Virus record (IMG/VR): IMGVR_UViG_3300005529_000001
Coordinates: 305,476 to 369,475 of that record
Length of the DNA: 64,000 nt
Reading direction: 5' to 3' (one strand)
The notes under the pieces are model-generated. The model was given only the letters and a program-made list of their open reading frames with translations. It had not been told where the DNA came from and did no database searches. Below, in pieces: positions 8,945 through 64,000 of the stretch. Positions within the stretch are counted from its first letter, which is position 1. Each line of letters opens with the position of its first letter. Made by a program: the position numbers and the translations under genes.

Positions 8945-9153
8945 ACTCATCGCTCTCTTATGAGAAGCTGGTCATGTTCTTGTATCTGCTGATGCGTGAC
9001 GTAGCACCAACAGGCTTTGTCGTCAGCGCTCTCAGGGAAACGGTGAAAGCTGTCGCAGAGACTGAAGTCACGCCCGAGAGCCCAAATACATACTCCAGCA
9101 AGGAGTTACAAGCATATGCTGAGAGGTTGGCAACGGAAATGGTGACGGGATGA
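8941..9153 (+). CDS. hypothetical protein
   Basis: ATGA overlaps on both sides. Confidence 0.6.
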   Translation: MNSSLSYEKLVMFLYLLMRDVAPTGFVVSALRETVKAVAETEVTPESPNTYSSKELQAYAERLATEMVTG

Positions 9154-9362
9154 CGATCCGTCAACGTGTCATCCATGTGTTGCTCGACTCAAGCACGCCA
9201 CGAACTGCATCAGACATCTACCACGTCCTGAACAACAGCGGGTATGTCAAGCTGTCATCCTTGTCCGGCATCTTGAAGAGGATGTATGATGCTGGAGAGC
9301 TACGACGAGTTGATGAATACGGCCCCCGCGGTGGGTACGGCTACTTGGTGAATCACTCATGA
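9150..9362 (+). CDS. small winged-helix-like DNA-binding protein
   Basis: TASDIY...LSSLSGILKRMYDAGELRRV...GYGY pattern. Confidence 0.55.
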   Translation: MTIRQRVIHVLLDSSTPRTASDIYHVLNNSGYVKLSSLSGILKRMYDAGELRRVDEYGPRGGYGYLVNHS

Positions 9363-10087
9363 GACACGTCAACATCAAACAAAAGCTTGAGGAAATCGGC
9401 GTCTCGCTTGATTCGATCATGATGGGTGACTTCGATTACATCGGAGAATACACTGCCAAACGTGATAGGAAGCCGAACGATGCCAACTACAAGAAGTACG
9501 GCGCGTATTACCGCTCCAACTATGAACGGGGGATTCTAATCTACTACCTAATCCGCCAGTTCAACCTAAGGTCATTCCTTGAGGTTGGTTTTGGTCGCGG
9601 TTATGGGACGTTTTGTGCTGCACGAGCTTTCCATGACGCAGGAATCGAGGGAAAAGTCCTAACCATCGACCCCGCTCTTGACGAGAAATACCTGACTGCA
9701 CTCCAACAGGTCTTTCCCAAAGAGTGGTTCAAGTGCATCCAGTTTGCCAAGGGCACGTCACAAGCGATACTTCCTCAGGTCAAAGATCACTATGATCTTG
9801 TCTATGTTGATGGCGACCATTCGTATGACGGCACCAAACATGACTGGGAGAAGACCAAAGACTTGTGGGACAAGTTCTTGCTGTTTGACGATTACCACCT
9901 CCCCACGAAAGACGACCCAGGCATCCAGTGCTCACGACTGATCGATGAGATCGACGATCCATCAAAGGAACTCATCATCATGGACCGCCGGATGTTTTTC
10001 GATGACCGCCGCTTCACCGATGATCAGATCGATTACGGTCAGGTGTTATTGAGCAAACCAGGAACGGGCCGTGATGATTGGGAATGA
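9359..10087 (+). CDS. class I SAM-dependent methyltransferase (Methyltransf_24-like, sugar O-methylation type)
   Basis: FLEVGFGRGYG, YDLVYVDGDHSYDG, LLFDDY. Confidence 0.88.
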   Translation: MRHVNIKQKLEEIGVSLDSIMMGDFDYIGEYTAKRDRKPNDANYKKYGAYYRSNYERGILIYYLIRQFNLRSFLEVGFGRGYGTFCAARAFHDAGIEGKVLTIDPALDEKYLTALQQVFPKEWFKCIQFAKGTSQAILPQVKDHYDLVYVDGDHSYDGTKHDWEKTKDLWDKFLLFDDYHLPTKDDPGIQCSRLIDEIDDPSKELIIMDRRMFFDDRRFTDDQIDYGQVLLSKPGTGRDDWE

Positions 10088-25283: not shown

Positions 25284-26291
25284 ATGAGCGAGTTTGGAAT
25301 TGTCATCATGCGGGCACAGCCCTTTCACAATGCGCACCTGGAATTGGTGCGTTTTGCGCTTAAGGAAGCGCAAAAAGTAGTCATCATCCTGGGAAGTGCC
25401 AACGCGCCCCGGGACACAATGAACCCCTTCACCGCCGACCAACGGCGTGACATGGTCAGGAGTTGCCTGACTGCCGACGAGCTCTCTCGTGTCGAGATCA
25501 TCTCCGCGAAAGACTACCTCTCAAACAACATGTGGATCGCAGCGGTCCAAAACTCGGTCGATGCTGTCACGGGCGGGTCCAGTGATATCAAGCTGATCGG
25601 TCACAAGAAAGACGCCTCAAGCTTCTACTTGAAGCTGTTTCCACAGTGGAGCTTCCATGAGACGGGAGCTTTCTCTGAGCTCAATGCGACGAGCGTCAGG
25701 GAGAACCTGTTCCGACAGGATAAGATCACCATCAAGACGCAGGTGCCGAAGCCGGTCTACGACTACCTGTGCTCTTGGATGGAGAGCGCTGAGTACAAGC
25801 GCCTCCATGGTGAGTACAAGAACGTACAAGAAGAACATGCCGCTTGGGAGGAGAGCCCTTACGTCCCCACCTTCGTGACGACAGACGCCATCGTCATCTG
25901 CAGCGGTCACATCCTCATCGGCCGCCGGGGTGGAGCTTACGGCAAGGACCTGCTGGCTTGGCCAGGTGGGTACCTAGAGCAAGACAAGTCAATCCTGGAC
26001 TCTTGCATCCGTGAGCTCCGGGAGGAGACGAAGCTCAAGGTCTCGACCGAAGACCTGAAGAAGGCGGTCATCGATAAGGACGTTTTCGATGACCCCCGGC
26101 GCGACCAACGCGGGCGTGTCATCACCCATGCCTTCTGTTTCAAGCTGCCCGATGGGCGGCTACCTGAGGTCCAGGGTGCGGACGACATGGCCAAGGCATG
26201 GTGGATGACCATCAACGAGTTCTACACCCGAGAGCTCGAGTTCTTCGCAGACCATTTCAAGATGGGCTGCCGTTTCATCAATCGATTTTAA
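25284..26291 (+). CDS. nadM: bifunctional NMN adenylyltransferase / Nudix ADP-ribose pyrophosphatase
   Basis: MRAQPFHNAH (HxxH), ILGSAN...NPF, Nudix box PGGYLEQD...CIRELREET, DDPRRDQRGRVIT, GADD..KAWW. Confidence 0.95.
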   Translation: MSEFGIVIMRAQPFHNAHLELVRFALKEAQKVVIILGSANAPRDTMNPFTADQRRDMVRSCLTADELSRVEIISAKDYLSNNMWIAAVQNSVDAVTGGSSDIKLIGHKKDASSFYLKLFPQWSFHETGAFSELNATSVRENLFRQDKITIKTQVPKPVYDYLCSWMESAEYKRLHGEYKNVQEEHAAWEESPYVPTFVTTDAIVICSGHILIGRRGGAYGKDLLAWPGGYLEQDKSILDSCIRELREETKLKVSTEDLKKAVIDKDVFDDPRRDQRGRVITHAFCFKLPDGRLPEVQGADDMAKAWWMTINEFYTRELEFFADHFKMGCRFINRF

Positions 26292-26308
26292 AAAGTTCCG
26301 CCCGATCG

Positions 26309-26347
26309 AGCCAGAGAGGCCCGCGAGGCGCATCACGGAGAGTGAAT
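26309..26347 (+). promoter_or_regulatory. structured 5' element upstream of nadV (copy 2)
   Basis: AGCC-AGAGA-GGC ... TCAC-GGAGA-GTGA; ATG at 26348. Confidence 0.6.
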
Positions 26348-27799
26348 ATGAGAACCACATACATCAGGACGTACCTTAGAAAACCCGACCTCGAGCTCAG
26401 CGCGATCGAGGACACTGACTCGTATAAATTCAGCCACTTCCCCATGTACCCGGGCATGTCGTACATGGAGAGTTATCTCGAGGCTCGGGGCGGCGAGTTC
26501 GACACCTGTACCCTGTTTGGGTTGCAGTACGTCATCCACAAGTACATCGCCAAGCGTGTGACAGCAGCTGATGTCGAACGTGCTGAAGCCTTCGCCCTGG
26601 CACACGGTGAGCCGTTCAACCGCAAAGGTTGGATGCACATCGTCACGAAGTACCACGGTTACCTTCCCATCACCATCCGCGCCATCCCAGAGGGCATGGT
26701 GGTGCCCGTCAAGAACGCCGTGATGATTGTCAGGAGCCCGGTCGATCCCGAGTGTGCCTGGATCACTAACTGGTTGGAGACGTTGCTGTCCAGGGTCTGG
26801 TACCCGTCGACGGTCGCCATCGCGAGTCGCGAGATCAAGAAGGTCTGGAAGCATTACCTCGACCTGACCAGCGACACCCCCGAGGAGATCAGCTTTAAAC
26901 ACCATGACTTCGGTTCGCGTGGCGTCACCAGCCAGGAGCAGGCGATGCTCGGCGGCGCGGCCCACCTGCTTAACTTCCTCGGTAGCGATACCATCGCGGG
27001 CATCCGCATGGCGAATCACTATTACGACGAAGCCATGGCGGGTTTCAGCATCCCAGCCACCGAGCACTCGACGATCACCATCTTCGGTCGTGACCACGAA
27101 CGTGATGCCCTCAAGCTCTGGATCCAGAAGATGCTGGTCGAGCGTCAGGTCCCCGAAGGGCTGCCCAAGCTCGCTGCTTGCGTTGGCGACTCTTACGACA
27201 TTTACCGTTTCACGGAGATGGTTTGCGAACCCGAGATCTACGCCATGATTAAGGGTTCGGGCGGCACCCTGGTCGAGCGCCCCGATTCGGGCGACCCGAT
27301 CGAGGTGCTTCTCAGGATCCTCGGCATCATGGAGGATCGCCTCCCAAAGGGTGAGATCACTGTCAACTCTAAGGGTTTCAAGGTGTTGCCTGCGTGCCTC
27401 CGTCTCATCTGGGGCGATGGCATCAACCGTCGCAGCATGAAGACGATCCTGAAGGCAATCACAGACGCAGGATGGAGCGCCTCAAACCTGGCTTTCGGTT
27501 CGGGCGGTGGCCTGCTGATGGATTTCAACCGCGACACCCAGAAATGGGCGTTCAAGCTGTGCTACGCCATCGTGGACGGCACACCGCGCAAGGTGTCGAA
27601 GGACCCGATCACCGACCCGGGCAAGCGCTCGAAAGAGGGTCACCTCGATTTGATCGTCACCCCAAATGGCGTCGAAACGGTCACTATTCCAGACAATGTT
27701 GCAGCTCATCACAACAGCGTCATGGTGACCTACTACGATGGTGGTGACATCACATTCCACACCGACATGACCGCCTGCCGGACAAGGATGGCGATCTGA
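26348..27799 (+). CDS. nadV: nicotinamide phosphoribosyltransferase (NAMPT)
   Basis: TDSYKFSH, WITNWLETLLSRVWYPSTVA, HDFGSRG, GFSIPATEHS, GDSYD, RPDSGDP, IWGDGI, AFGSGGGL, KDPITDPGKRSK.G. Confidence 0.96.
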   Translation: MRTTYIRTYLRKPDLELSAIEDTDSYKFSHFPMYPGMSYMESYLEARGGEFDTCTLFGLQYVIHKYIAKRVTAADVERAEAFALAHGEPFNRKGWMHIVTKYHGYLPITIRAIPEGMVVPVKNAVMIVRSPVDPECAWITNWLETLLSRVWYPSTVAIASREIKKVWKHYLDLTSDTPEEISFKHHDFGSRGVTSQEQAMLGGAAHLLNFLGSDTIAGIRMANHYYDEAMAGFSIPATEHSTITIFGRDHERDALKLWIQKMLVERQVPEGLPKLAACVGDSYDIYRFTEMVCEPEIYAMIKGSGGTLVERPDSGDPIEVLLRILGIMEDRLPKGEITVNSKGFKVLPACLRLIWGDGINRRSMKTILKAITDAGWSASNLAFGSGGGLLMDFNRDTQKWAFKLCYAIVDGTPRKVSKDPITDPGKRSKEGHLDLIVTPNGVETVTIPDNVAAHHNSVMVTYYDGGDITFHTDMTACRTRMAI

Positions 27800-27818
27800 G
27801 GTGTTGTAGAATCTATGG

Positions 27819-28253
27819 ATGGATTACACCGCAAGCAAGATCGCCGATCACCTGTTCCAAGGCGGACGACCACCCCCGGGTGACGGCCTGAAAAACGCCG
27901 GGGTAGACGTCCTAGTCCTCTGTGCCAGAGAGTGGCAAGAGAGCGCGCTCTACCCCGGACTCATCGTCATCAAAGCTCCTGGTGATGATGATCGACGTGA
28001 ACATCGGTTAATGCAGTCCATCGACAAGTGGAAGCTCGCCGCAGAACTCTCAGCCGAACATGTCATGGCAGGTCGCAACGTCTTGATCACTTGCATGCAG
28101 GGACTCAATCGTTCAGGACTAGTCATGGCTATGACGTTACGGATTCTGACGGGATGGTCGGGAAAGAAGATCGTCGAGCACATCCAGAATCACCGCGAGC
28201 ATGCCTTGTTCAACGATACGTTCGTTCGTTACATTGAGACCAACTACCCATGA
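27819..28253 (+). CDS. dual-specificity / protein-tyrosine phosphatase family protein
   Basis: HLFQG, VLITCMQGLNRSG (CX5R). Confidence 0.85.
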   Translation: MDYTASKIADHLFQGGRPPPGDGLKNAGVDVLVLCAREWQESALYPGLIVIKAPGDDDRREHRLMQSIDKWKLAAELSAEHVMAGRNVLITCMQGLNRSGLVMAMTLRILTGWSGKKIVEHIQNHREHALFNDTFVRYIETNYP

Positions 28254-28756
28254 TCAACTACCTTGTCGGAGACGCAACTGATCCACGGGTTACGGGCAAC
28301 AAGATCATCGCTCATGTCTGCAATGACATTGGTGGCTGGGGCAGAGGGTTCGTCTTGTCGGTGTCCAAGAAGTGGTCCGAGCCCGAAGCGGTTTACCGTC
28401 AAGGGAAAGACCTGACCTTGGGATCTGTCATGTTTGTCCCGGTATCCCACACCGATACAACCATCCAGGAGACGATCTACGTCGCAAACATGATTGGCCA
28501 GCGCGGTGTCATTGCAGCCGAAGACGGCACCCCACCCATCCGTTACGAAGCCATCGAAACGTGCTTGGGACGCGTCAGAGCGTTTGCGTTGCAGCTCGGT
28601 GGAGCAAGCGTCCACATGCCCCGGATCGGTTGCGGCCTGGCAGGAGGTAAATGGAGCAAGATGGAACCCATCATCGAGCGAGCGCTTGATGGCATCGACA
28701 CATACGTGTATGATTTTGACACGAAAGACTCCCGGACTGTTTCCTGGAACAAGTGA
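28250..28756 (+). CDS. macrodomain protein (ADP-ribose deconjugase-like)
   Basis: YLVGDAT, IIAHVCNDIGGWGRGF, VHMPRIGCGLAGGKW. Confidence 0.9.
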   Translation: MINYLVGDATDPRVTGNKIIAHVCNDIGGWGRGFVLSVSKKWSEPEAVYRQGKDLTLGSVMFVPVSHTDTTIQETIYVANMIGQRGVIAAEDGTPPIRYEAIETCLGRVRAFALQLGGASVHMPRIGCGLAGGKWSKMEPIIERALDGIDTYVYDFDTKDSRTVSWNK

Positions 28757-28909: not shown

Positions 28910-29392
28910 ATGTCATATCACATCGGCCTGCGGGTGCTGCGGGCAAAAATCAGGGGCTTTCAGGCCGCTGGTAGCACCATCGCGTCACGCATCTCGAAGT
29001 CCGAGAAGGACCGCAAGAACCGTCTCTGGAACGAGAAGCGGCTCCTCGGCGTTCACTGTCGTGCTCACCTGGTTGCATATGGGCTGCTCCGTGGGGTACC
29101 GTATGACCAGATCGAGAAATGCGCACCAAACAACAAGCTAAACCCACAGCTCGTCCTCGACATCATGCTGGCTCACAACGGCTGGGACGCAAAACGAGGG
29201 TACGTCAAGTACGACCTAGCGGTGGTCGAAAAGCTGCTGGCTCCTGCTTCAAACGAGACTGGGAGCGTGCAGGAAAGCCCAACGGTTGTTGCTGCCCCAG
29301 CTGCCTCGCCGAACTCGGGCGTAGTCCACGTGGTCAAGAGCTTGCTAGGCTTGTCCGCGAGGTCTCAAACCGCCCCAAGAAGCGCCCAGTGA
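28910..29392 (+). CDS. hypothetical protein (basic N-terminal domain)
   Basis: RBS AGAGG; AHLVAYGLLRGVPY.QIE motif that I recall from genes next to phage Pth2-like genes. Confidence 0.7.
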   Translation: MSYHIGLRVLRAKIRGFQAAGSTIASRISKSEKDRKNRLWNEKRLLGVHCRAHLVAYGLLRGVPYDQIEKCAPNNKLNPQLVLDIMLAHNGWDAKRGYVKYDLAVVEKLLAPASNETGSVQESPTVVAAPAASPNSGVVHVVKSLLGLSARSQTAPRSAQ

Positions 29393-29400
29393 GACAGGCC

Positions 29401-29757
29401 ATGGCCACCATCAAAGAGGGTGACAAGCTTTACGTGGTGACCCGGAGAGACATCTCTCCAGGCTATCAGGGCGTCCAATCACAACATGCAGCCATCCAGT
29501 TTGCGTTTGACCATCCCGAACGTGGGACGGAGTGGTTCAAGAACTCGAACTACTTGGCATGGCTGTCGGTCGAGAATGAGGTTGAGCTGATGAAGCTCAT
29601 CACTGATGCTGCGGACGTCGGGCTCAAATGGTCAGCGTTCAGGGAGCCCGACGTGGGTGGCCAGATCACTGCGATCGCGCTCGAGCCCCACCCACGGACT
29701 GCCGCGCTGTGCAAAGCATTGCCGCTTGCGCTTAGAGAACTGGAACAGGTGAAGTGA
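29401..29757 (+). CDS. peptidyl-tRNA hydrolase 2 (Pth2)-like protein
   Basis: KLYVVTRRDI..G..GVQS.HAA, LSVENE.EL, FREPD..GQITAIALEP; start set at ATG 29401. Confidence 0.75.
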   Translation: MATIKEGDKLYVVTRRDISPGYQGVQSQHAAIQFAFDHPERGTEWFKNSNYLAWLSVENEVELMKLITDAADVGLKWSAFREPDVGGQITAIALEPHPRTAALCKALPLALRELEQVK

Positions 29758-29758
29758 C

Positions 29759-30118
29759 ATGGACCAAGCACTTAATACCATCGTCTATGACGATTTCGCC
29801 AGAGTTGACATGCGTGCGGGCCTCATCACAGCCGCAGAGGCTTTGCCAAAGTCAGAGTTGCTGAAGCTCCAGGTTGACTTCGGTGAGCTAGGAACTCGGC
29901 AGGTCCTTGCTCGTCTCGGCAAGAGCTACGAGCCAGCAACTCTTGTCAACCTCACCGCAGCGTTCGTCGTCAACTTGCCCCCACGTACCATGAAGGATCT
30001 TGAGAGTAACGGCATGATCCTTGCGGCAGAAGTCAAGGATTCTGATGTTCCTGCTCCACACCGCGTTGCCGTGGTGTTGCTCCCCGGGACAGTCCGACCA
30101 GGAACGAGGTTGGGATGA
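29759..30118 (+). CDS. stand-alone tRNA-binding OB-fold protein (CsaA/Trbp111/MetRS C-terminal-like)
   Basis: YDDFARVDMRAG.I..AE....S.LLKLQVDFG..G.RQV, VVNLPPR.M...ESNGMILAA. Confidence 0.9.
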   Translation: MDQALNTIVYDDFARVDMRAGLITAAEALPKSELLKLQVDFGELGTRQVLARLGKSYEPATLVNLTAAFVVNLPPRTMKDLESNGMILAAEVKDSDVPAPHRVAVVLLPGTVRPGTRLG

Positions 30119-30741
30119 CAGAGAACCGCGCGACGTTCTTCGCTAGGTTGGAACCTGTGTTGGCTCCGAGCGACCTGCTCGATGTCCAACTCGCTTACAC
30201 CCTGGCGAAATTCGGCCATCGGGCTCAGGCTCGCAAGGAGCTGGGGCCTGCAGGCAAAGCAGTGCGTTATTTCGAGCACTGCCGTCGTGTCGCGCTCATC
30301 CTCATTGATGAGGTCAAGATCGTCGAACCTGGGCTTGTCATCACCGCCCTTCTACATGATTGTCCGGAAGACACTAAGGATGTCAATCCCGCCATCATTG
30401 AGCACTGCTTTGGGCACAAGGTCGTCACCAGTGTCAAGGTCCTGAGCAAGACGCCCAAGGAAGGCTACAACGAGCGATTTTGGGCTTGTTCGCTTTGGCA
30501 GCCCTACATCATCAAGGGATGTGATAGGCTTGACAACCTGAGGTCACTGTACTGCTGCCCGGATGACTTCCGAGCCAAACAGGTGGCTGAGACACGGGAG
30601 AAGTACTTCCCGCTGTTCGACCGGATGATGCACCTGGTCCCCATCAAACACCGCGAACGAGCGGCATGGCTTCGCGACGCGGTGCGTCGCGAGACCGAAC
30701 GCCAAGCAACGTTACTGGAGGCGTCACATGAAGAAGTCTGA
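30115..30741 (+). CDS. HD-domain small alarmone hydrolase ((p)ppGpp hydrolase, RelA/SpoT HD or Mesh1-like)
   Basis: H..Q.RK....YFEH...VA, ALLHDCPEDT, FG..V...V..LSK, IKGCDRLDNLRSL. Confidence 0.85.
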   Translation: MTENRATFFARLEPVLAPSDLLDVQLAYTLAKFGHRAQARKELGPAGKAVRYFEHCRRVALILIDEVKIVEPGLVITALLHDCPEDTKDVNPAIIEHCFGHKVVTSVKVLSKTPKEGYNERFWACSLWQPYIIKGCDRLDNLRSLYCCPDDFRAKQVAETREKYFPLFDRMMHLVPIKHRERAAWLRDAVRRETERQATLLEASHEEV

Positions 30742-31156
30742 GCTGGAACACTTCATCACCCTGACCCTGGGTGACTGGTCACATGACGGTCACAGCCAGA
30801 CTGACGTCATCACCGTCAGGTGTAACGTCGACAAGAAGGACCTCGAGAAAGCATATAAAAAGGGCACCAAGAAATTAGGTTTCGATCTCACCGAAGATGT
30901 CTGCGCCGACTACGAAGACATGTCGGCATCAGCCGACGTCATCGAAAAGCTCAAAACTGCTGGTATCAAGCCCGAAGATTTCATCGAGAACGAAGATGAA
31001 GATGACGAGGGATGGTCATTCGCCTACAATGTCGAAGCCTTCGCCAGTCTCTGGCTGCGTATCGCTCAGTTGGGCGATCCCGATCTCAAGTACGAGCTCG
31101 TCGAAACCAACCCGAACAATATTAACATCGGAGGTTACGGCCTATTTGGATCTTGA
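30728..31156 (+). CDS. conserved phage hypothetical protein
   Basis: LGDWSHDGH ... NIGGYGLF; acidic. Confidence 0.7.
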   Translation: MKKSELEHFITLTLGDWSHDGHSQTDVITVRCNVDKKDLEKAYKKGTKKLGFDLTEDVCADYEDMSASADVIEKLKTAGIKPEDFIENEDEDDEGWSFAYNVEAFASLWLRIAQLGDPDLKYELVETNPNNINIGGYGLFGS

Positions 31157-31163
31157 ACATAAC

Positions 31164-31236
31164 GGGTCCGTAGCTCAATGGCAGAGCAGCTCGATTTCAA
31201 CCGAGTGTGTTGCGGGTTCAAGTCCCGTCGGGCCCC
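31164..31236 (+). tRNA. atypical tRNA with 8-nt anticodon loop AUUUCAAC (UCA or UUCA anticodon possible)
   Basis: GGGTCCG/CGGGCCC acceptor, GCTC/GAGC D-stem, GCTCG/CGAGT anticodon stem, 5-nt variable loop, GCGGG-TTCAAGT-CCCGT T-arm. Confidence 0.85.
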
Positions 31237-31242
31237 CAAAAA

Positions 31243-31316
31243 GCTCCCGTAGCTCAGAGGCAGAGCAGCCGGATTTCAACCCGATGCGGTCGTGGGTTCG
31301 ATCCCCACCAGGAGCG
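31243..31316 (+). tRNA. second atypical tRNA with the same 8-nt anticodon loop AUUUCAAC
   Basis: GCTCCCG/CAGGAGC acceptor (one mismatch), G73, GCTC/GAGC D-stem, GCCGG/CCGAT stem (one mismatch), GTGGG-TTCGATC-CCCAC T-arm. Confidence 0.8.
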
Positions 31317-31319
31317 CAA

Positions 31320-31544
31320 ATGAGGATCAGGGGACCACAACCCGGAAAACAAGTCATTCGCTGTAGCGGTTGTGATCGTGAATGTGATGCAGTTGATCTC
31401 ATCGTGTTTGGGATCGATGACGTTGGTTTTCCGCCATTTGGTGGCATGTACTGTTCTGGGAAGTGCATGCCACCGCCACCCCGTCCCAAAAACCTCTGGC
31501 AACGCATACGCGCTGAGTTGGGACTTGGATACATCACCAAATGA
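31320..31544 (+). CDS. small Cys-rich hypothetical protein (74 aa)
   Basis: ATG 31320 right after the second tRNA; CSGC...YCSGKC. Confidence 0.55.
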   Translation: MRIRGPQPGKQVIRCSGCDRECDAVDLIVFGIDDVGFPPFGGMYCSGKCMPPPPRPKNLWQRIRAELGLGYITK

Positions 31545-31577: not shown

Positions 31578-32426
31578 ATGCCCCGTGAAGCACTAACTCC
31601 CGAGCAAGAGGCTGAACAAGCAAAGTACGAGAAGCTGCCAACCGGGAAACCGCATGTCAGCTTCTCTGAGCTCCGTGACTGGAGCGAGTGCTCGTACCGT
31701 CACCTTCTGAAGTACGTAAAGAAGATCAATGCAGATATGCCTGGAATCCACATGGATTTTGGGACTGCAATCCATGCAGCTTGCGAGAACTACCTAAAAA
31801 CGCGGGTGATGGACAAGAAGATCTTTCTTAATACGCTGAAGAAGCTGTGGGAAGCCAACGGGCCAAAGCTACCCGAAGAGTACACTGTCAAACAGTTCCA
31901 GGAGTTTGGTAAGCAAGGGATCAGCATCCTGGGTGACGTGCCCAAGTGGCTGGACGAGCAATTCCCGGGATGGGAATATGTGGACGCTGAACATGCCCTT
32001 TATGAGCCCGTTGAGGGAAGCTCACATGCCTTTAAGGGCTACATCGATGCCATCATACGAGCGCCTGGCCCCAAGGGCAAGATATTGGTATGGCTCCTTG
32101 ATTGGAAGACAACGTCGTGGGGCTGGTCCACCTACAAGAAAAGTGATGAGCTTGTCAGGTCACAGCTTGTTCTATACAAGAACTTCTGGTCCATCAAAAC
32201 AGGTCACAACGTCAAGGACGTACGTTGTGGCTTTGTCCTCCTGAAGCGGACGGGTAAACCGGGCAAGCACTGTGAGCTGGTTACCACATCAGTTGGTGAA
32301 ATCACGACTGGAAAGTCGCTGAAGGTTGTCAACAACATGATCACGAGCGTCAAGCGTGGGATCGCGCTCAAAAACAGAAACAGCTGCCAGTTCTGTGACT
32401 TCTATAACACCCCTCACTGCACATGA
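31578..32426 (+). CDS. Cas4/RecB-like PD-(D/E)XK exonuclease with Fe-S ligands
   Basis: SFSEL....C.YR, FGTAIH, KGYIDA, LLDWKT, QL.LY, CQFCDF...C. Confidence 0.88.
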   Translation: MPREALTPEQEAEQAKYEKLPTGKPHVSFSELRDWSECSYRHLLKYVKKINADMPGIHMDFGTAIHAACENYLKTRVMDKKIFLNTLKKLWEANGPKLPEEYTVKQFQEFGKQGISILGDVPKWLDEQFPGWEYVDAEHALYEPVEGSSHAFKGYIDAIIRAPGPKGKILVWLLDWKTTSWGWSTYKKSDELVRSQLVLYKNFWSIKTGHNVKDVRCGFVLLKRTGKPGKHCELVTTSVGEITTGKSLKVVNNMITSVKRGIALKNRNSCQFCDFYNTPHCT

Positions 32427-32477
32427 AGTGCAGAACACTGTTACAGTTGGTCGTCCGGTGGATAGGATGGAACCACG

Positions 32478-33797
32478 ATGACGGAACTGTCCCAATCGAC
32501 TGTCAACTTCTCAACTGTCCCCCCTGAGATCGCTAAGATCCCAACGATGGCACCCAAAAAGAAGGTGTTGATGTTGAGCGATCATCCTCTCTCAACGAGC
32601 GGTGTTGGCGTGCAAGCCCGGTACCTGATCACGGGTCTCCTTCAGACGGGCAAGTACACGTTCCGTTGCTTTGGTGGCGCTGTCAAGCACGATAACTACA
32701 ACACCATCAAAGTCAACGATGATTTCATCGTCAAACCGACCAACGGCTTCGGGGACAAGAATCTGTTGCGGATGACGCTAGCCGTCGAGAAGCCTGACAT
32801 CCTGCTCCTGTTCACTGATCCAAGGTTCTTCATCTGGGTCTGGGAGATGGAGGACGAGATTCACCAGATCTGCCCGATCGCCTACAATCACCTGTGGGAC
32901 AACCCTCCCTGGCCCGAGTTCAACCGGGTGCTGTACGAGTCAACTGATCTGATCAACTGCATCAACTATCCCACTTACGAAATGGTTCACAAGCGGTTCC
33001 CAGAGAAAACGAACTACATCCCCCATGCCGTTCCCAAAGAAGTCTTTCACCCACTGCCAGCCTCTGAACGAGCTAGGCTGAAAACGATGATCATCGGCAA
33101 TGAACGTGCCGATCACTTTGTGGCTCTTTACGTGTCACGAAATGCCAGGAGAAAGATGCCGAGTGACATCATCCTGTCATTCAAGCAGTTTCTGGATGAG
33201 ATGGAAAAGAAGCATGGCCATCGTAAGGGTACCCTAATCTTGCACACCGATCCGATGGACCCTGAGGGACCCAACCTTCACCATGTCATTGACATGTTTC
33301 ACTTGAAGAACAACGTTGTCTTTTCAAAGGACCGCATTGGATTTGAGCAGATGAACGCTCTGTACAACATCGGTGACTGTGTTGTGAACCGGTCGTGCAA
33401 CGAGGGGTTTGGGTTGCCCACGTTGGAGATGATGATGTGTGGAAAGCCCATCATTGCTATCAAGACAGGTGGTTTGACTCGACAGGTTGAGAACCACGAG
33501 ACGGGCGAACAGTACGGGATTGGCATGGACCCCGATGTCAGGACGTTGGTTGGAAACCAGCTTGTTCCTTACATCTATGAAGACTTCGTGTCACATGAAA
33601 AACTGAGTGCCGCGTTTACAAAGCTGTATGAGATGGGCGAAGAAGAGCGTCTCCGTCTTGGCGAGAGAGCTCGCCAGCACGCCCTCAAAGATTATGACAT
33701 CCAGAACATGGTCAATGATTGGGATAGGACGTTGACGGGCCTGACCGACAGCTGGAACAAGACAAAGCTCACGCGGTGGGAAAAGGTGGAGATCTGA
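32478..33797 (+). CDS. GT4 glycosyltransferase
   Basis: LMLSDHP...SGVG, YIPHAV, SRNARRKMP, NEGFGLPTLEMMMCGKPII. Confidence 0.92.
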   Translation: MTELSQSTVNFSTVPPEIAKIPTMAPKKKVLMLSDHPLSTSGVGVQARYLITGLLQTGKYTFRCFGGAVKHDNYNTIKVNDDFIVKPTNGFGDKNLLRMTLAVEKPDILLLFTDPRFFIWVWEMEDEIHQICPIAYNHLWDNPPWPEFNRVLYESTDLINCINYPTYEMVHKRFPEKTNYIPHAVPKEVFHPLPASERARLKTMIIGNERADHFVALYVSRNARRKMPSDIILSFKQFLDEMEKKHGHRKGTLILHTDPMDPEGPNLHHVIDMFHLKNNVVFSKDRIGFEQMNALYNIGDCVVNRSCNEGFGLPTLEMMMCGKPIIAIKTGGLTRQVENHETGEQYGIGMDPDVRTLVGNQLVPYIYEDFVSHEKLSAAFTKLYEMGEEERLRLGERARQHALKDYDIQNMVNDWDRTLTGLTDSWNKTKLTRWEKVEI

Positions 33798-34954
33798 TGA
33801 AGACCGTCGTATTGCGAGCCCCGTCACTGACACAGTCTGGCTACGGTGTCCATGCAAGGCAGCTAGCGAGGTGGTTGTTGTCGAAGCCCAACCTTGACGT
33901 AAGGTTCGCGACGTTGCCCTGGGGAGAGACGCCCTGGTTACTGAACCAAGAAGCACACGATGGCTTGGTCGGTGAGATCATGAAACGAAGTGTCAAGCCC
34001 GATCACAGAGCTGATGTTTCGGTGCAATTACAGCTACCCAACGAGTGGGACCCGTCAGTTGCGCCCGTGAACATCGGCATCACAGCGGGTGTCGAGACTG
34101 ATAAGTGTCACCCATCATGGCCAGCGGCATGTAACAAGATGACAACAGTTGTCGTCCCGAGCCAGCACACCAAGCTGTGTTTGACCAACTCAGGTCCCAT
34201 CACGGTGCCACTTCATGTCATTCCTGAGGCGTACTCAGACGCATGCCGCGAGAAAGACCTGCCTCAAGTCGTTGACTTTGACACGTCGTTCAACTTTCTG
34301 GTCTTTGGCCAGTTGACGGGCAACAACCCAGAAAACGATCGGAAGAACATCTTCTACACCATCAAGTGGTTGACTGAAGTCTTCAAAGACGATCCAGACG
34401 TTGGTATTGTCCTGAAGACCAACGTGGGTCGTAACAGCAGGATCGACAGGAATGTTACAAAAGGATTGTTGACGACTGTCGCTCAAGAAAGCCGAAGGGG
34501 CGGGACAGGACCAAAGATTCACCTGTTACATGGTGACCTTGATGATGTTGAAATCGCAAGCCTGTACCGTCACCCGAAGATCAAAGCGCTTGTCGCTCTG
34601 ACACGCGGCGAGGGATTTGGGCTACCGATCCTCGAGGCTGCAGCGAGCGGGTTGCCGATCATCGCCACGGGATGGTCAGGCCATCTGGACTTTCTGAGGC
34701 ACGGAAAGTACATCAGCATCTACTACCAGTTGGGCGAAGTCCATCCGTCTAGGATCGACAGCAAGATCTTTGTTCCTGGCTCACGTTGGGCTAACCCAAG
34801 CGAAGAAGACTTCAAAAAGCGCGTCGCCAAGTTCCGAGCAAGTAACCACACTCCGAAACAGTGGGCTGAAGAGCTAAAACCAACGATCCAAGAACAGTAC
34901 AGTCTCGATGCAATTTGCAAACGATATGATGAGCTCTTGGGGGAGTGTTTCTGA
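33797..34954 (+). CDS. GT4 glycosyltransferase
   Basis: LTQSGYGVHAR, VVVPSQH, DRKNI, RGEGFGLPILEAAASGLPIIATGWSGHLDFL; TGATG overlap. Confidence 0.92.
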   Translation: MKTVVLRAPSLTQSGYGVHARQLARWLLSKPNLDVRFATLPWGETPWLLNQEAHDGLVGEIMKRSVKPDHRADVSVQLQLPNEWDPSVAPVNIGITAGVETDKCHPSWPAACNKMTTVVVPSQHTKLCLTNSGPITVPLHVIPEAYSDACREKDLPQVVDFDTSFNFLVFGQLTGNNPENDRKNIFYTIKWLTEVFKDDPDVGIVLKTNVGRNSRIDRNVTKGLLTTVAQESRRGGTGPKIHLLHGDLDDVEIASLYRHPKIKALVALTRGEGFGLPILEAAASGLPIIATGWSGHLDFLRHGKYISIYYQLGEVHPSRIDSKIFVPGSRWANPSEEDFKKRVAKFRASNHTPKQWAEELKPTIQEQYSLDAICKRYDELLGECF

Positions 34955-40191: not shown

Positions 40192-42048
40192 ATGACACTC
40201 CAAAGAGATGATCTGAAAGCTGTACGTCAAAGAAAATTCCTCGCAAAGGACTTTGACGCGCTGCGGAACAATTTGTTGGAGTATGCGAAGCTGTACTACC
40301 CAGACAGGCTACGTGACTTTTCTGACAACAGCTTGGGAGGCCTGCTGCTCGACATGGCGGCATACGTGGGCGACAACATGTCGTTCTACCTCGATCACCA
40401 GTTTGGTGAGCTCGATCCAACGACGGCCGTCGAGAGCCTCAACATCCAGCGATTGCTGCAACAAGCCGGAGTCCCGATCGTTGGTGCTTCGCCTGCTTTG
40501 TGTCCTGTTACGTTTTATGTGGAAGTTCCAGCGACCGTCATCAACAACGTGATGGGACCAAATCCTGATTGTTTGCCAATCATCAAAGCAAACTCAACGT
40601 TTTCTGCAAACAACGGGACCATCTTTGCGTTGCTTGAAGACCTTGATTACACCGCAACTACGTCCAACGGACAACTCCAAGTGATCGCAAGCGGCATGGC
40701 GAAGATCGGGCAAAAAGGTTCGAATGGTGTCCCGCAGACTTATATCCTAGCGATGACGGGCTTGTGCATCTCAGGCCAAGAAACGACAGAAAACATCGTT
40801 GTCGGAGCGACGTTCATCCCATTCAACAAGCTTCTGTTGGCTAACCCTGACGTATCACAGATAGTCAGCATCAACGACTTGCTCGGAAACATCTACTACC
40901 AGGTTGACGCATTGTCAAACGACACTGTTTACCAAAATGTTCTTAACACTGCTTCCGATAACGATCTGGTTTCTCAGGTCATCAAGGTCATCCCAGCCCC
41001 GTATCGTTACACTGTTGACGTTGACCTGTTGAGTCGAAAATCCATGCTCACGTTTGGCGGTGGCAACGCCGACTCGCTTAATGATGACATCATTCCTGAC
41101 CCATCATCATTTGCAATCTCATTTCCTTATACCACGACTTTTTCTCGGATTTCTGTCAACCCGCAACAGCTGCTCCAAACAACAACAATGGGTGTCGCCG
41201 CTGCAAACACCACGTACCAAATCACGTACCGCTATGGGGGCGGTCTTAGCCACAACGTGCCTGCAAACCAGATCCAAAGCGTCAGACAGCTGAACATGAT
41301 CTTCCCGGGCAACCCAACACCAGCTCTGGCAGGTGCAGTAAGGAGCTCACTGACTCTGACAAACAAGGTCCAAGCGTCTGGTGGTGAGGATGCTCCGTCA
41401 GCTGACGACCTCAAGTCTTTGATCCCATCAATCAGGAACAGCCAAGAAAGAATCGTCACACGTGAAGACTTGCTAGCACGTGTATACACGATTCCCGCTA
41501 ACTTTGGCCGCGTCTTTAGGTGCGCTGCTCGTAGCAACCCAAATAACCCGCTGGCAACGTTGCTCTATATCGTCAGTCGCAACACCCAGGGACAGCTCAT
41601 TACCTCGCCTGACACGTTGAAACAGAACCTGGTCAAGTATCTCAACCCATACCGGATGATCAGCGATGCGATTGATATCCTCGATGCTAGGATCGTAGAC
41701 TTGCAATTTACGTTCGATGTGTTGATCGATCCGAGCCTGAACCGTACTATCGTCATCCAAAACATCATCACTGCGTTGACGTCGTTCTTTGCGGTTCAAA
41801 ACTTCCAGATTGACCAGCCCATTGTCATCGACAACGTCAGAAACACCATCTTCAGCATCCCAGGTGTGGTGTCGATAAACAGCATGAAGTTCACGAATGT
41901 CCAGGGGACGGTCAACAACATGCAATACAGCAGCGTCATCTTTGATGTGGACTCAAACACTCGAAAGAACATCCTGTTCCCTCCAGCGGGCGGGATCTTT
42001 GAAGTACGGTATCCAACCGTTGACATCGTTGGGAGGGCGTCAGTCTGA
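40192..42048 (+). CDS. baseplate wedge protein, T4 gp6/gpJ-like
   Basis: KDFDALRNNL..YAK.YYP....DFSD.SLGGLLLDMAAYVGD..SFYLD.Q, YRYGGG, SGGEDA, QERIVT.ED...R.Y.IP..FG.V. Confidence 0.9.
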   Translation: MTLQRDDLKAVRQRKFLAKDFDALRNNLLEYAKLYYPDRLRDFSDNSLGGLLLDMAAYVGDNMSFYLDHQFGELDPTTAVESLNIQRLLQQAGVPIVGASPALCPVTFYVEVPATVINNVMGPNPDCLPIIKANSTFSANNGTIFALLEDLDYTATTSNGQLQVIASGMAKIGQKGSNGVPQTYILAMTGLCISGQETTENIVVGATFIPFNKLLLANPDVSQIVSINDLLGNIYYQVDALSNDTVYQNVLNTASDNDLVSQVIKVIPAPYRYTVDVDLLSRKSMLTFGGGNADSLNDDIIPDPSSFAISFPYTTTFSRISVNPQQLLQTTTMGVAAANTTYQITYRYGGGLSHNVPANQIQSVRQLNMIFPGNPTPALAGAVRSSLTLTNKVQASGGEDAPSADDLKSLIPSIRNSQERIVTREDLLARVYTIPANFGRVFRCAARSNPNNPLATLLYIVSRNTQGQLITSPDTLKQNLVKYLNPYRMISDAIDILDARIVDLQFTFDVLIDPSLNRTIVIQNIITALTSFFAVQNFQIDQPIVIDNVRNTIFSIPGVVSINSMKFTNVQGTVNNMQYSSVIFDVDSNTRKNILFPPAGGIFEVRYPTVDIVGRASV

Positions 42049-43934
42049 TGTTTAAGGTTCTTCCAGCTATCAAAGATGCGTACATCCAGAACCGGTTTGT
42101 TAACGGCGTGACACAGGTTTCAGGCAACGTAGGATTGGCGGGTTCGTTAGACCTGTTCAAGCTTTACGGGTACACTTCCACACAAACTGCATCAGGGACC
42201 ATTCCCAATGTAGAGCTGTCACGTTTGTTGGTTCATTTCAATTTGCAACCGCTACGTGACATGGTCTCAGCGGGACAGGTTGACATCAACAATGCGAGTT
42301 TCAACGTTCGCTTGCACCTGTTTGATGTTTATGGCGGCCAACCCACGCCCGACAATTTTAGCGTCATCGTTTATCCTTTGTCAGCTTCGTTTGATGAAGG
42401 TCATGGACGTGATGTTGTCTACTATTCTGACTATGATGCTTGCAATTGGCTCAACTCTTCGCTGGTTTCTGGATCATGGCAAGGACAAGGTTGCGTTAGC
42501 GGTGGTTTCTACCCACAAGCATGTGACTTCTTCACCGGATCAAACAACCTAAACCTGGGTGTCCAACAAACGTTTTTCAAGGGAACAGAGGACCTTGACG
42601 TTGACATAACAACAATCGTTAGTGCAACGCTCGCTGGGTTGCTGCCAGACGCCGGGCTTCGCATCGCTTTTGCTCCAGCACTGGAAAACGACACACACTC
42701 ATACTTTGTCAAACGCTTTGGTTCACGGCAAGCATTCAATCCCGAAAAACGTCCGTGCTTGTTTGTCAGGTTTGACGACTCCGTCCAAGATGACACTCAA
42801 AACTTTTATCTTGATTCACCTAGCTATCTGTTCCTTTATAACTACGTCAGGAACTCACGTCTAGGTAACCTGATCTCGGGTTCCACGTCGGTAACAGGAA
42901 GCAATAGTCTTGTTCTGAAACTGTACGGACAATTCCCGTCGGTGACTCCCGTTGTGGTCAGCAGCAGTCAAGCTCTGATACAATCGGGGAAGTTTACGTT
43001 TTCAAACCCAAGCGATGTGCTTTTTGCGGGAACGTACAGTATACTCAATTCAACGTCGGGGACTATCACAACAGGTAGCCAGCTTTACGCGGGCGTGCTA
43101 TCAGGTTCTTACACCACCCAACAGATCGTGGGAAGCGGCAGCTTTGTGTATGCTGACACCACGGGCATCCACGTCGCAATCTCAGGAACAGCAACCTTCA
43201 ATGGGACGCTTGATGGAACGGCCGGAGTCTATGCCCTGACGGGAACATACCTTCCCAACGGCGGTTTCCTGTTCAGCGCAAGCTACTTCCTCAGCCAGAC
43301 AATGGGACCGGGACCGTACGTGGCGGGACCGTTTGTGGGTAGCCAGCTGTCTTTGGGAAGCAACTTCCAAACGGGAATCTATTCCGCATCGGTTACGTTG
43401 TCATCAACAGACCCAAGCTTGCAACCACAGTGGCAACACTCGGGCAGCGTCACCTTCATCCCAGTCTGGGGCAGCCTTGATGGCACCGTTGCCTTCCTGA
43501 CCGGGAGCGAGATCAAGGCTTATCCCCCGGTCAGGGGCCCACAGTCACAGAACTGGAAACACCTGAACGTTCGCATCATCGGCTTGAATGATGAGTACGA
43601 TAACCAGACGCAACAGGTGCTAAGAGTAAACCTTTGGGACTTCACGCAACCCGTCTTGCTCAGTGCGGTTCGCTTGCCCGTAGAGTTGCCCGGAATCATC
43701 ATCCGAGATGTTCATTACCAGATCCGTGACAACAGTGATGGATACATCGCGGTTCCTTTCGATCTAGTCACAAATTCGACAAGGTTGTCTAACGATTCAC
43801 AGAACATGTTCTTCACCCTCGACACGTCAAACCTAATCTCAGGTCACTCTTATGTCATCGACATCATGGTGGTGACAGACAACGTCAAACAGCTTTACAA
43901 GGGCGCATCATCGCCGTTCAGAGTGGCTGGATGA
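42048..43934 (+). CDS. putative baseplate/tail structural protein
   Basis: Coupled to the gp6-like gene; beta-rich and Ser/Gly/Thr-rich. Confidence 0.7.
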   Translation: MFKVLPAIKDAYIQNRFVNGVTQVSGNVGLAGSLDLFKLYGYTSTQTASGTIPNVELSRLLVHFNLQPLRDMVSAGQVDINNASFNVRLHLFDVYGGQPTPDNFSVIVYPLSASFDEGHGRDVVYYSDYDACNWLNSSLVSGSWQGQGCVSGGFYPQACDFFTGSNNLNLGVQQTFFKGTEDLDVDITTIVSATLAGLLPDAGLRIAFAPALENDTHSYFVKRFGSRQAFNPEKRPCLFVRFDDSVQDDTQNFYLDSPSYLFLYNYVRNSRLGNLISGSTSVTGSNSLVLKLYGQFPSVTPVVVSSSQALIQSGKFTFSNPSDVLFAGTYSILNSTSGTITTGSQLYAGVLSGSYTTQQIVGSGSFVYADTTGIHVAISGTATFNGTLDGTAGVYALTGTYLPNGGFLFSASYFLSQTMGPGPYVAGPFVGSQLSLGSNFQTGIYSASVTLSSTDPSLQPQWQHSGSVTFIPVWGSLDGTVAFLTGSEIKAYPPVRGPQSQNWKHLNVRIIGLNDEYDNQTQQVLRVNLWDFTQPVLLSAVRLPVELPGIIIRDVHYQIRDNSDGYIAVPFDLVTNSTRLSNDSQNMFFTLDTSNLISGHSYVIDIMVVTDNVKQLYKGASSPFRVAG

Positions 43935-43971
43935 GAGTAGATTTTGATAGGTAAGGCCAGGTCCTGCGCCG

Positions 43972-62680: not shown

Positions 62681-63379
62681 TCACTTGAGCGCGTTCCGGA
62701 GCTCTATGTTGTCGCCACAGTAAATGTCAAGCTTGTCCAGCCATGCCCGCGACTTCTGCTTGAACATGATGGGCATCTTGGTCTTCTTGTCGTTCTTCGC
62801 CTTGCAAACGACGCCCTCGAATGTCATGCCGGGCAACGTACCAGCCCTGACAGACTCGATGAACTCAGGAGTGACGTCACCTTCATACAGGACCTTGGCA
62901 TGGTCCAGTCCTTCAGCAAGCTTCAGGAACCGCGCTGGCTCCAAGATGCCCTGGGCGAAGGGGGCGATATCAAACAAGGTGACCGTCAGCTCTTCCTGCA
63001 GGTTGTGCATCCCCGCAAAGGAGCTGGGTCCCCAGAGCTCGAAAAAGCACATGGCTCGGTCGATGTTAGCTTCTTGGAGACGTTGTGCTAACGTCTCGCC
63101 GTACTTAGCCTGCACCAGCCCCGGGGCCTGCCCGAAGATGGGATCGGTCTCATCGACCAGCCGGTTGCGAGTGCCAAACTTGTGCCAGCCCTTCTTGCTG
63201 GTCCACTCGGCACGGATGTTGCTGCCGTCGAGCTTGTCGAAGGCAACGATGGGAAGGTGAGATTCAGTTGCATATACGATGCTAGGATATGTTTTCACGA
63301 TAGACTCCGGATCTCTTCGTTCATCAAGATCATAGTTCAGGCGCTTATCACGCCGGCGGTAGTGTTCTCGTTCAGACAT
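62681..63379 (-). CDS. second RNA ligase-family nucleotidyltransferase (Rnl2-like adenylation domain only)
   Basis: FDKLDGSNIR, FGTRN, FFELWG, LFDI, EGVVCK, FKQK. Confidence 0.75.
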   Translation of the reverse strand: MSEREHYRRRDKRLNYDLDERRDPESIVKTYPSIVYATESHLPIVAFDKLDGSNIRAEWTSKKGWHKFGTRNRLVDETDPIFGQAPGLVQAKYGETLAQRLQEANIDRAMCFFELWGPSSFAGMHNLQEELTVTLFDIAPFAQGILEPARFLKLAEGLDHAKVLYEGDVTPEFIESVRAGTLPGMTFEGVVCKAKNDKKTKMPIMFKQKSRAWLDKLDIYCGDNIELRNALK

Positions 63380-63658: not shown

Positions 63659-63661
63659 CCG

Positions 63662-63745
63662 TACTCACGGTGGGATTCGAACCCACACTCCCTTGCGGGA
63701 ACCGGGGTTTGAGCCCGGCGCGTCTGCCAATTCCGCCACGTGAGC
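63662..63745 (-). tRNA. trnL: tRNA-Leu(CAA)
   Basis: GCTCACG/CGTGAGT acceptor, A73, GGCGGAATTGGCAGACGC D-arm, CCGGG-CTCAAAC-CCCGG, long variable arm, GTGGG-TTCGAAT-CCCAC. Confidence 0.95.
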
Positions 63746-63949: not shown

Positions 63950-64000
63950 TTCAATCTCTCGCTCGCTTTGATCGCCTGTTCGTGACTACTCCCGATCATC

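Follow-up and report, generated by a model that had tools for sequence, protein, structure and literature searches.

According to a 2016 review of recoding, only a handful of natural transfer RNAs (tRNAs) have anticodon loops of other than seven nucleotides (nt) (PMC5009743). In SufJ, a laboratory mutant of a sense tRNA, a C inserted at position 31.5 enlarges the loop to eight nt; the tRNA makes three zero-frame base pairs in the A site, binds with normal affinity, reads ACC-N and shifts the frame by +1 independently of the fourth base (PMC4238358). Yeast mitochondrial tRNAThr1 has an eight-nt loop, UUUUAGGU, in which three bases precede and two follow the anticodon UAG (3+3+2), and reads CUN triplets in frame (PMC3113583). 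Stop-codon anticodons are carried by the Sup-UCA and Sup-CUA tRNAs of recoded phages, for which the published route has the stop codon depleted before the suppressor tRNA appears (Borges et al., 10.1101/2021.08.26.457843), and phage tRNAs with anticodon-loop substitutions have been proposed to escape anticodon nucleases (PMC10264068). In the literature we found no case combining an enlarged loop with a stop-codon anticodon. Here we describe two tandem tRNA genes that probably do so, in the terminal 64 kb (the window; 64,000 nt) of IMGVR_UViG_3300005529_000001 (369,475 base pairs, bp), the genome of a huge tailed phage. Both are tRNAs and probable opal-type decoders, i.e. readers of UGA, and resemble SufJ in architecture, with a putative activity. 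No prior description of this tRNA family was found in the literature, the cluster M mycobacteriophages (Pope et al. 2014), possibly the source of the phage tRNAs that the 2016 review lists among its non-standard loops, lying outside the comparison.

Two tandem tRNAs with an identical eight-nt anticodon loop

The original prediction, made from the sequence of this DNA, was of two tandem tRNAs with different bodies and an identical eight-nt anticodon loop. The calls of two programs agree with it: ARAGORN reports tRNA-???(ttca) at 31164-31237 and 31243-31317, and the Rfam model RF00005 (gathering score 29) scores tRNA 1 at 52.2 bits and tRNA 2 at 46.9 bits. tRNA 1 (body type A) occupies positions 31164..31236 of the plus strand, with the acceptor GGGUCCG/CGGGCCC, a five-nt variable loop, discriminator C73 and no encoded CCA. 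Its minimum-energy fold is the cloverleaf, in which a perfect 5-bp stem, GCUCG/CGAGU, closes unambiguously around the loop AUUUCAAC (31194..31201, plus strand), in line with the stem register and covariation across relatives. tRNA 2 (body type B; 31243..31316, plus strand) has the acceptor GCUCCCG/CAGGAGC, with a C6.A67 mismatch, and discriminator G73. Its loop, again AUUUCAAC (31273..31280, plus strand), is closed by the stem GCCGG/CCGAU, whose C28.A42 mismatch is also found in type B relatives. A seven-nt loop, as forced on tRNA 2 by Rfam, requires two mismatches, compared with the single C.A of the eight-nt register. Taken alone, tRNA 2 has its free-energy minimum in a non-cloverleaf pairing, so that its register rests on comparative data. 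The claim that both genes fold as cloverleaves hence stood for tRNA 1 on folding energy; for tRNA 2 it is borne by the comparative data and not by the lowest-energy fold. The other predicted features, namely discriminators C and G, no long variable arm and a shared loop region, the 10-mer GATTTCAACC common to tRNA 1 and tRNA 2, are all present in the sequence. With a cloverleaf of 7-bp acceptor, GG-containing D-arm and T-arm with a GTTCRANYC-type loop, a score above threshold and covariation in four helices, the pair matches the tRNA model, but departs from it in the seven-base loop.

Like tRNA-Sec (selC), the pair would have the anticodon UCA. Unlike tRNA-Sec, it lacks a long variable arm (this region measures 4-7 nt), its acceptor has 7 bp and its T-stem 5 bp, and no selenocysteine-specific features were seen, which bears out the earlier view that these are not selenocysteine tRNAs. 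The selC loop is CUUCAAA, which is resembled by one loop type of the family described below (ACUUCAAG, as in L002b). Across the T-arm of tRNA 1 and the D-arm of tRNA 2 (31205-31269), Rfam also gives a sub-threshold match to the Y RNA-like YrlA (30.8 bits, threshold 69), most likely merely reflecting tRNA-like modules.

The same genome is present in an independent ENA assembly of 369,506 bp. As this assembly runs beyond both window ends, the genome is circular or circularly permuted. Two further loci (L003 and L016) are identical in sequence to the window across the tRNA region.

The enlarged loop is conserved in a clade of huge phages

Pattern scans detected the same loop in further viral and metagenomic contigs, at loci syntenic with the window. 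Related loci (n=80, designated by L numbers) were collected with the PD-(D/E)XK nuclease gene downstream of the pair (31578..32426, plus strand; Pfam PF12705) as syntenic anchor for orthologous tRNA loci (alignment A2). About 25 of the 80 have one or two tRNAs at the equivalent spot, and after deduplication 31 distinct UUCAA-type tRNAs remained, from independent metagenomes and about twenty related phages. The search for the loop in other phages, which the original prediction had called for, thus returned 31 distinct homologues at the same locus. A scan of a genome collection for the loop pattern gave two chance matches only, neither with a tRNA. In a nuclease tree built by a quick maximum-likelihood method, a single clade contains every tRNA-bearing locus (SH-aLRT 97-99), and one subclade has the eight-nt-loop type in 19 of 21 rows.

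The loop itself is AUUUCAAC in 17 of the 31 tRNAs, ACUUCAAG in six, CUUUCAAU and ACUUCAAA in three each, and CCUUCAAC and UUUUCAAC in one each. In 31/31 homologues no other register yields more stem pairs than the eight-nt one, and loop bases 1 and 8 never pair. Across the alignment 94.6% of the cells are paired, compared with 75% in shuffles, and 18 of the 21 pairs show double-sided changes. The three loop-proximal pairs of the anticodon stem are 97-100% paired with 8-9 compensatory changes each, and the pair that closes the eight-nt loop is conserved to 97% with nine double changes. When the 3' strand is shifted by one base, only about 50% (52% or less) of the cells still pair. Loops that lack a T-run (ACTTCAAG, ACUUCAAG) likewise have eight nt, which excludes a homopolymer error; 31 distinct homologues from independent samples together with stem covariation exclude sequencing error and decay. 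The notion that selection, and not a single error or decay, keeps the loop is therefore confirmed.

The bodies are more variable. The type B acceptor with G73 is repeated in many relatives; type B always has G73 and type A varies between A, U and C, so that the discriminator takes all four bases (A, U, C, G) across the family. Several members encode CCA, about one third have the D-arm GCCUAGAGGUCAGGC, and the 11-24 pair is C-G in 31/31. A distant huge phage (L243, 799-871), whose RF1-like gene (see below) has the shift site CUU UAG, carries a tRNA with the sequence GUCGGG-CUUCAA-CCCGA, in which the CUUCAA core forms a six-nt loop, or an eight-nt loop if its G-C closing pair opens. This tRNA may be a related oddity.

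Loop statistics favour UCA as the anticodon

The family loop has the consensus N-Y-U-U-C-A-A-N, with UUCAA invariant in the 31 tRNAs. The base preceding UUCAA is U or C only, as position 32 would be, and loop bases 2 and 8 occur in the combinations U.C, U.U, C.A, C.G and C.C, like a 32.38 pair. At the first loop position A prevails (84%), an unusual base for position 32. In a 3+3+2 reading the loop consists of an extra N, Y32 (U or C), an invariant U33, the anticodon UCA, an invariant A37 and a variable N38; for tRNA 1 this favoured layout gives an extra A in a 31.5-like position, then U32, U33, UCA, A37 and C38. A 2+3+3 reading (anticodon UUC) or a 2+4+2 reading (UUCA) would place A at position 32 in 84% and C at position 33 in one third of the tRNAs. 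Y-U-UCA-A is thus invariant in the family, and the loop statistics and the orthology with CUA tRNAs point to UCA as the anticodon presented. In the favoured register the extra nt lies between positions 31 and 32, and positions 33-37 are canonical, as in SufJ-type tRNAs.

Together, the loop statistics, the CUA tRNAs of sister phages and a separate tRNA-Glu(UUC) in the phage itself lead to UGA (opal) decoding, and not Glu, as the best reading. Among the options left open by the original prediction, the UCA anticodon with an extra base is therefore the one best supported. From the sequence-level results (gene structures, conservation, loop layout statistics, orthology with CUA tRNAs and UGA as stop) we infer expression, charging, UGA decoding and the decoding outcome of the pair; that the two are translationally active UGA readers appears to us to stand at about an even chance.

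Sister phages carry CUA tRNAs at the same locus

At the orthologous locus, seven related loci (L041, L042, L043, L047 and L051-L053) carry tRNA(CUA), often in tandem. Several of these have an unpaired A ahead of UU-CUA-AN, and in L042 and L043 the acceptor of the CUA tRNAs is of the type B seen in window tRNA 2 (GCUCCYG ... G73). The HD_4 gene beside the CUA tRNAs of L043 contains, at about position 3995, an in-frame TAG that is aligned to a conserved Gln (..GNRA*VRKEL.. compared with ..GHRAQARKEL.. in the window). This suggests amber suppression or use of TAG for Gln in the sister clade, and hence that the locus holds stop-codon readers that are used.

The tRNA array of the phage and amino-acid identity

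Apart from the pair, the phage has an array of at least 36 canonical tRNAs with seven-nt loops, including Glu(UUC) and Glu(CUC), beyond the right window end and around the RF1-like gene. Besides the pair, ARAGORN calls one more tRNA in the window, a normal tRNA-Leu(CAA) (63661-63745, minus strand); it is the first member of the array and is followed by the others in L180/L181/L281. No tRNAs for Trp, Ala, Asn, Asp, Gln, Ile, Lys or Tyr were seen in the 30 kb read. The tRNA-Glu(UUC) has the seven-nt loop CCUUCAC, with C at position 33; one tRNA-Gly(GCC) and tRNA-Leu(GAG) possibly have C33 as well. G73 suits TrpRS (with UCA) and GlnRS (with CUA). The G73 of type B and the published pattern of TGA-to-Trp and TAG-to-Gln reassignment (10.1101/2021.08.26.457843) would fit together.

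Proposed decoding of UGA

We propose that the pair are working phage tRNAs of one conserved family, kept at one syntenic locus in a clade of huge phages, and that they would be the UGA counterparts of the CUA amber suppressors which sister phages keep at the same place. In this model they would compete with release factor 2 for UGA in the A site and read it as a triplet, either inefficiently or at a small number of programmed sites. Once UGA has been read, the enlarged loop could have either of two effects: translation goes on in frame, which is the behaviour of yeast mitochondrial tRNAThr1, or the ribosome moves into the +1 frame, on the pattern of SufJ. The more specific proposal, that the pair are natural SufJ-type stop-codon frameshifters which bind UGA in the A site and shift by +1 whatever the fourth base, we consider unlikely.

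Like SufJ, the pair owes its eight-nt loop to one additional base that separates the stem from position 32, the bases from 33 to 37 being otherwise canonical. In SufJ the additional base is a C that arose in a laboratory mutant of a sense tRNA, whereas the pair is natural, conserved in a clade, has a probable stop anticodon and an extra base that is mostly A, and its frameshifting is putative. With tRNAThr1 the pair shares a natural, conserved eight-nt loop in which the anticodon is preceded by three bases and followed by two. However, tRNAThr1 changed the meaning of the sense codons CUN in an organelle without a competing tRNA, while the pair would compete with a release factor at the main stop codon.

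The family is kept throughout a clade, in two tRNA bodies, in genomes that end most genes at its apparent cognate codon, which contradicts the usual picture that suppressor tRNAs arrive only once a stop codon has become rare. If UGA is indeed decoded, the virus could adjust termination or reading frame at a codon that continues to serve it as a stop, and genetic-code engineering would gain naturally occurring, ready-made scaffolds for the decoding of UGA or UGA-N. In the frameshifting case, UGA would stay the main stop while the tRNA supply opens CUU-UGA-N gates, for example in the RF1-like gene, and would act as a tRNA-controlled switch on termination capacity during infection.

An RF1-like gene with a +1 frameshift cassette

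Within the tRNA array, about 9 kb (8.8-9.5 kb) beyond window position 64000, the ENA contig carries a release-factor-like gene in two pieces. In L181 it occupies 8972-9085 and 9054-9644, on the minus strand in window orientation, and relatives are found in L182-L192 and L201-L280. The first open reading frame (ORF), of 37 codons, ends ..CGG AGG TGT CTT TGA A and matches positions 105-136 of the RF1 model; the second, of 196 codons, lies in the +1 frame and matches positions 157-325. The gene scores 179.7 bits with RF1, 115.8 bits with RF2 and 85.4 bits with PrfH; the GGQ motif is present and domain 1 is missing. GGAGG, followed after 3 nt by CUU UGA, is the classic frameshift cassette of prfB, but in the phage it occurs within a gene of RF1 type and at another position. 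Of 80 huge-phage loci, 73 keep the cassette, as CUU UGA in 57, CUU UAG in 13 and CUU UAA in three; the remaining genes are continuous (three), have an in-frame stop instead (three) or could not be classified (one). In a bacterial survey the stop of the prfB motif was TGA in 98.6% and never TAG, and prfA had no programmed shift (PMC12421855), so that the RF1-type cassette of the phages appears to be undescribed.

The genome that encodes the pair thus also has, in its RF1-like gene, a UGA at which translation has to move into the +1 frame. A SufJ-type UGA reader would pass this shift site, and an ordinary in-frame suppressor would defeat the shift. The RF1-like UGA is only a candidate target of the pair. 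Two correlations were also examined and rejected: the stop at the shift site does not track the tRNA anticodon, as the CUA-type phage of L043 (L206) also has CUU UGA, and the release-factor tripeptide does not change with the shift-site stop, PPT predominating in every class.

A 362-kb phage with 31% GC (L191/L200) has an unshifted RF1-like gene with an in-frame TGA (ATC TGA ATA; L191 at about 3034, L200 8161-8844). A tRNA(CUA) lies nearby, and TGA stops are rare (2/27 ORFs). This phage may be a truly recoded relative.

UGA remains the main stop codon

As the original prediction had noted, TGA is a stop in the window: it ends 59 of 76 greedy ORFs (~77%), many of them in ATGA or TGATG overlaps with the following gene. 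In the clade with eight-nt loops, TGA ends 248 genes, TAG 45 and TAA 30 (n=323). A reassigned stop that is rare or absent, as in recoded genomes with a code 4-like usage, is hence not what these phages show. In the related clade without tRNAs at the locus (L045-L095), TGA is also the commonest stop (127/223), even at 33-40% GC. TAA is expected to dominate at such a composition.

Several observations weigh against UGA decoding by the pair. As about 77% of the genes end in TGA, a UGA reader would extend most phage proteins, and back-up stops are not enriched downstream of TGA in either the 0 or the +1 frame. Conserved genes were compared for internal TGA over about 60 kb and about 20 genomes. 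Alignments totalling 282,466 residues, from 17 proteins encoded at 31-59 kb (baseplate genes included) across 79 related loci, contain none, and window proteins compared with related loci over 26-37 kb have no internal stop except the TAG of L043. A TGA-rich genome with a UGA reader is the opposite of the published depletion-first route (10.1101/2021.08.26.457843). The C33 of the phage's own tRNA-Glu(UUC) weakens the argument from an invariant U33, which is not absolute in this genome. When the tRNA bodies were compared with 83 annotated phage tRNAs and the 36 of the phage itself, the best hits were scattered (Val, Gly, Asn, Pro, Ile, Arg, Thr), so that the isotype cannot be deduced from the bodies; expression and charging are putative, and a different charge on each of the two tRNAs, as the original prediction had it, is no more than possible. 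Finally, these tRNAs are not required for the cassette of the RF1-like gene, which is shared by the CUA-type phage of L043 (L206) and by many huge phages in whose fetched flanks no such tRNA was seen.

Other searches for genes split by TGA were equally negative. ORF pairs joined by one TGA each had their own ribosome-binding site and start, or one frame was non-coding, and two further 20-kb steps along the genome contained no split genes. An all-frame reciprocal tblastn was swamped by homologous non-coding frames, and a filter for gene stops left only trivial C-terminal differences. A coding-density test for recoding on 10-kb loci was too noisy and gave no signal. The scan for split genes that the original prediction had called for thus came out empty among the conserved genes compared; outside the window, the RF1-like gene with its +1 shift at UGA was found. 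One gene (42048-43934) ends GGA TGA GAG TAG (43929-43940), where its closest relatives (L099, L101) have TGG GAG TAG (Trp, Glu, stop); this change of a penultimate TGG to TGA fits reading of UGA as Trp, or equally a harmless loss of two residues.

Since UGA is the main stop and the conserved genes compared contain no internal UGA, UGA is not reassigned. Any decoding of it must, as judged from these comparisons, be inefficient, conditional or restricted to a few sites beyond those compared. The expectation that readthrough would be conditional holds in this form, any decoding being partial or site-specific. The pair resembles the Sup-UCA and Sup-CUA tRNAs of recoded phages (10.1101/2021.08.26.457843) in being phage-borne and in its probable stop-codon anticodon, with CUA versions in sister phages and a TAG at a Gln position, and a release-factor gene in the same genome recalls the published "code change modules" (10.1101/2021.08.26.457843). 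It differs from them by its loop of eight and not seven nt and by two different bodies in tandem. The genome differs from those of recoded phages in that the cognate stop TGA is the commonest, no in-frame TGA is found in the conserved genes compared, and GC is mid to high. As TGA is not depleted and in-frame stops are absent from the conserved genes compared, the pair is set apart from the suppressors of recoded phages.

Alternative explanations

The tRNAs may not decode at all, acting instead as decoys or sponges for host defences that target tRNAs (nuclease, nucleotidyltransferase, pyrophosphokinase) or as ligands of the neighbouring tRNA-binding, PTH2 or HD proteins. Their place in a conserved module of PTH2-like, tRNA-binding and RelA/SpoT-type HD hydrolase genes, at a distance from the main array with its 36 or more canonical tRNAs, agrees with such a role, and a UGA reader looks costly in a TGA-rich genome. 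However, the acceptor, T-arm and D-arm keep full tRNA geometry with compensatory change, CCA is encoded in several members, and the anticodon-like UUCAA does not vary although the rest of the molecule has drifted. The TAG at a conserved Gln suggests that the sister tRNAs do decode, and PTH genes beside tRNA genes are common in tRNA-rich phages. We consider a purely non-decoding function unlikely.

We regard as slightly less probable still that the pair are variant Glu tRNAs with the anticodon UUC and an extra A after A37 (37.5-type), serving as nuclease-resistant Glu decoders or as +1 frameshifters at GAA-N. Several family members are labelled Glu(ttc) by ARAGORN, the D-arm GCCUAGAGGUCAGGC presumably recalls tRNA-Glu, and the C33 of the phage's own tRNA-Glu shows that C is tolerated at this position. 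Phage tRNAs with altered loops have been proposed to evade anticodon nucleases (PMC10264068), and this phage encodes RNA ligases. Like those tRNAs, the pair has non-standard loop bases in a genome with RNA ligases, and its genome's tRNA-Glu has C33; the published cases are substitutions in seven-nt loops of sense tRNAs that replace cleaved host tRNAs, with insertions and stop anticodons unmentioned (PMC10264068). Against the Glu reading, the seven-nt register never beats the eight-nt register, and positions 32 and 33 would be A and U or C. The 11-24 pair is C-G throughout the family, where the phage's own tRNA-Glu has U11 and tRNA-Glu is expected to combine UUC, a seven-nt loop and U11-A24. 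Identity to the phage's own Glu tRNAs is low (0.61-0.66), no closer than to other isotypes, the discriminator varies over all four bases, and the orthologues in sister phages are CUA suppressors. With canonical Glu(UUC) and Glu(CUC) in the genome, the pair is not needed for GAA. This option of the original prediction is therefore disfavoured.

Somewhat more improbable again is quadruplet decoding, in which UUCA pairs with UGAA (or UGAG by wobble) and the frame shifts by +1 only at UGA followed by a purine. ARAGORN itself calls a four-base anticodon, ttca, the shift site CUU UGA A of the phage's own RF1-like gene is exactly complementary to UUCA, and engineered quadruplet tRNAs have eight-nt loops laid out as 2+4+2. 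In the family, however, a 2+4+2 layout puts mostly A at position 32 and U or C at 33, both atypical, and the statistics favour 3+3+2. TGAA is not avoided at gene ends (15 of the 59 TGA-ended ORFs). The RF1-like site is the only UGA recoding site found in this genome family, and in relatives with the same tRNA family its UGA is followed not by A alone but also by C or G (UGAC 39, UGAG 14 and UGAA 5 among all sites). This variable fourth base, and the wide spread of the cassette, which includes CUA-type phages, give no support to UUCA:UGAA pairing, so that the four-base option of the original prediction is unlikely. Structures of SufJ and other suppressors show three A-site base pairs only (PMC4238358).

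That the genes are dead or erroneous, through decay of a former suppressor or an assembly error in the T run, has the C6.A67 and C28.A42 mismatches and the non-cloverleaf lowest-energy fold of tRNA 2 in its favour, but is practically dismissed by the eight-nt loop kept in 31 distinct sequences (including loops without a T run), by 94.6% pairing with abundant compensatory change, and by the same genome in an independent assembly.

Genomic context of the pair

The window has the gene content of a huge tailed phage, with NAMPT, glycosyltransferases, a late-sigma-like protein, a baseplate wedge protein and two RNA ligases. Megablast of the tRNA region against GenBank phages and BLAST against E. 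coli genomes gave zero matches, and sensitive blastn of this region returned generic tRNA similarity only, to many isotypes.

Upstream of the pair, on the plus strand, lie genes for a protein with a PTH2-like (peptidyl-tRNA hydrolase 2) domain (29119..29757; Pfam PF01981, 24.3 bits), which is also present in L002 and L013, a tRNA-binding domain protein of the Trbp111/CsaA-type fold family (29759..30118; Pfam PF01588, 58 bits, with 72 bits for the L002 homologue) and an HD_4 protein of the RelA/SpoT hydrolase type (30115..30741; Pfam PF13328), whose L043 homologue has the in-frame TAG. A function-unassigned protein (30728..31156, plus strand; phrog_20092) is encoded directly 5' of the tRNAs, and a small Cys-rich ORF of 74 residues without a family match (31320..31544, plus strand) follows directly 3'. 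The PTH2-like, tRNA-binding-domain and HD_4 genes upstream and the PD-(D/E)XK nuclease and glycosyltransferases downstream form the synteny shared with the related loci. The PTH2, tRNA-binding and HD neighbours are suggestive of tRNA handling.

Just upstream of this module (26198-28756), genes for NAMPT, a dual-specificity-phosphatase-like protein and a weakly matching macro-domain protein point to NAD and ADP-ribose metabolism. The two RNA ligases are a T4 Rnl1-like protein (phrog_562) and a PF09414 protein, encoded on the minus strand at 59704-61047 and 62681-63379, and a second PTH2 gene (L180, 4763-5293) lies beside the main tRNA array; together these look like an island for tRNA repair and maintenance. 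Downstream of the pair, the nuclease and two glycosyltransferases are separate genes in the window (junctions at 32424-32480 and 33795-33799), with TGATG at the junction of the glycosyltransferases. Both glycosyltransferases are joined in a single ORF in L133 (544-2977), and in L047/L159 the nuclease and glycosyltransferases form a single open frame of 1110 codons.

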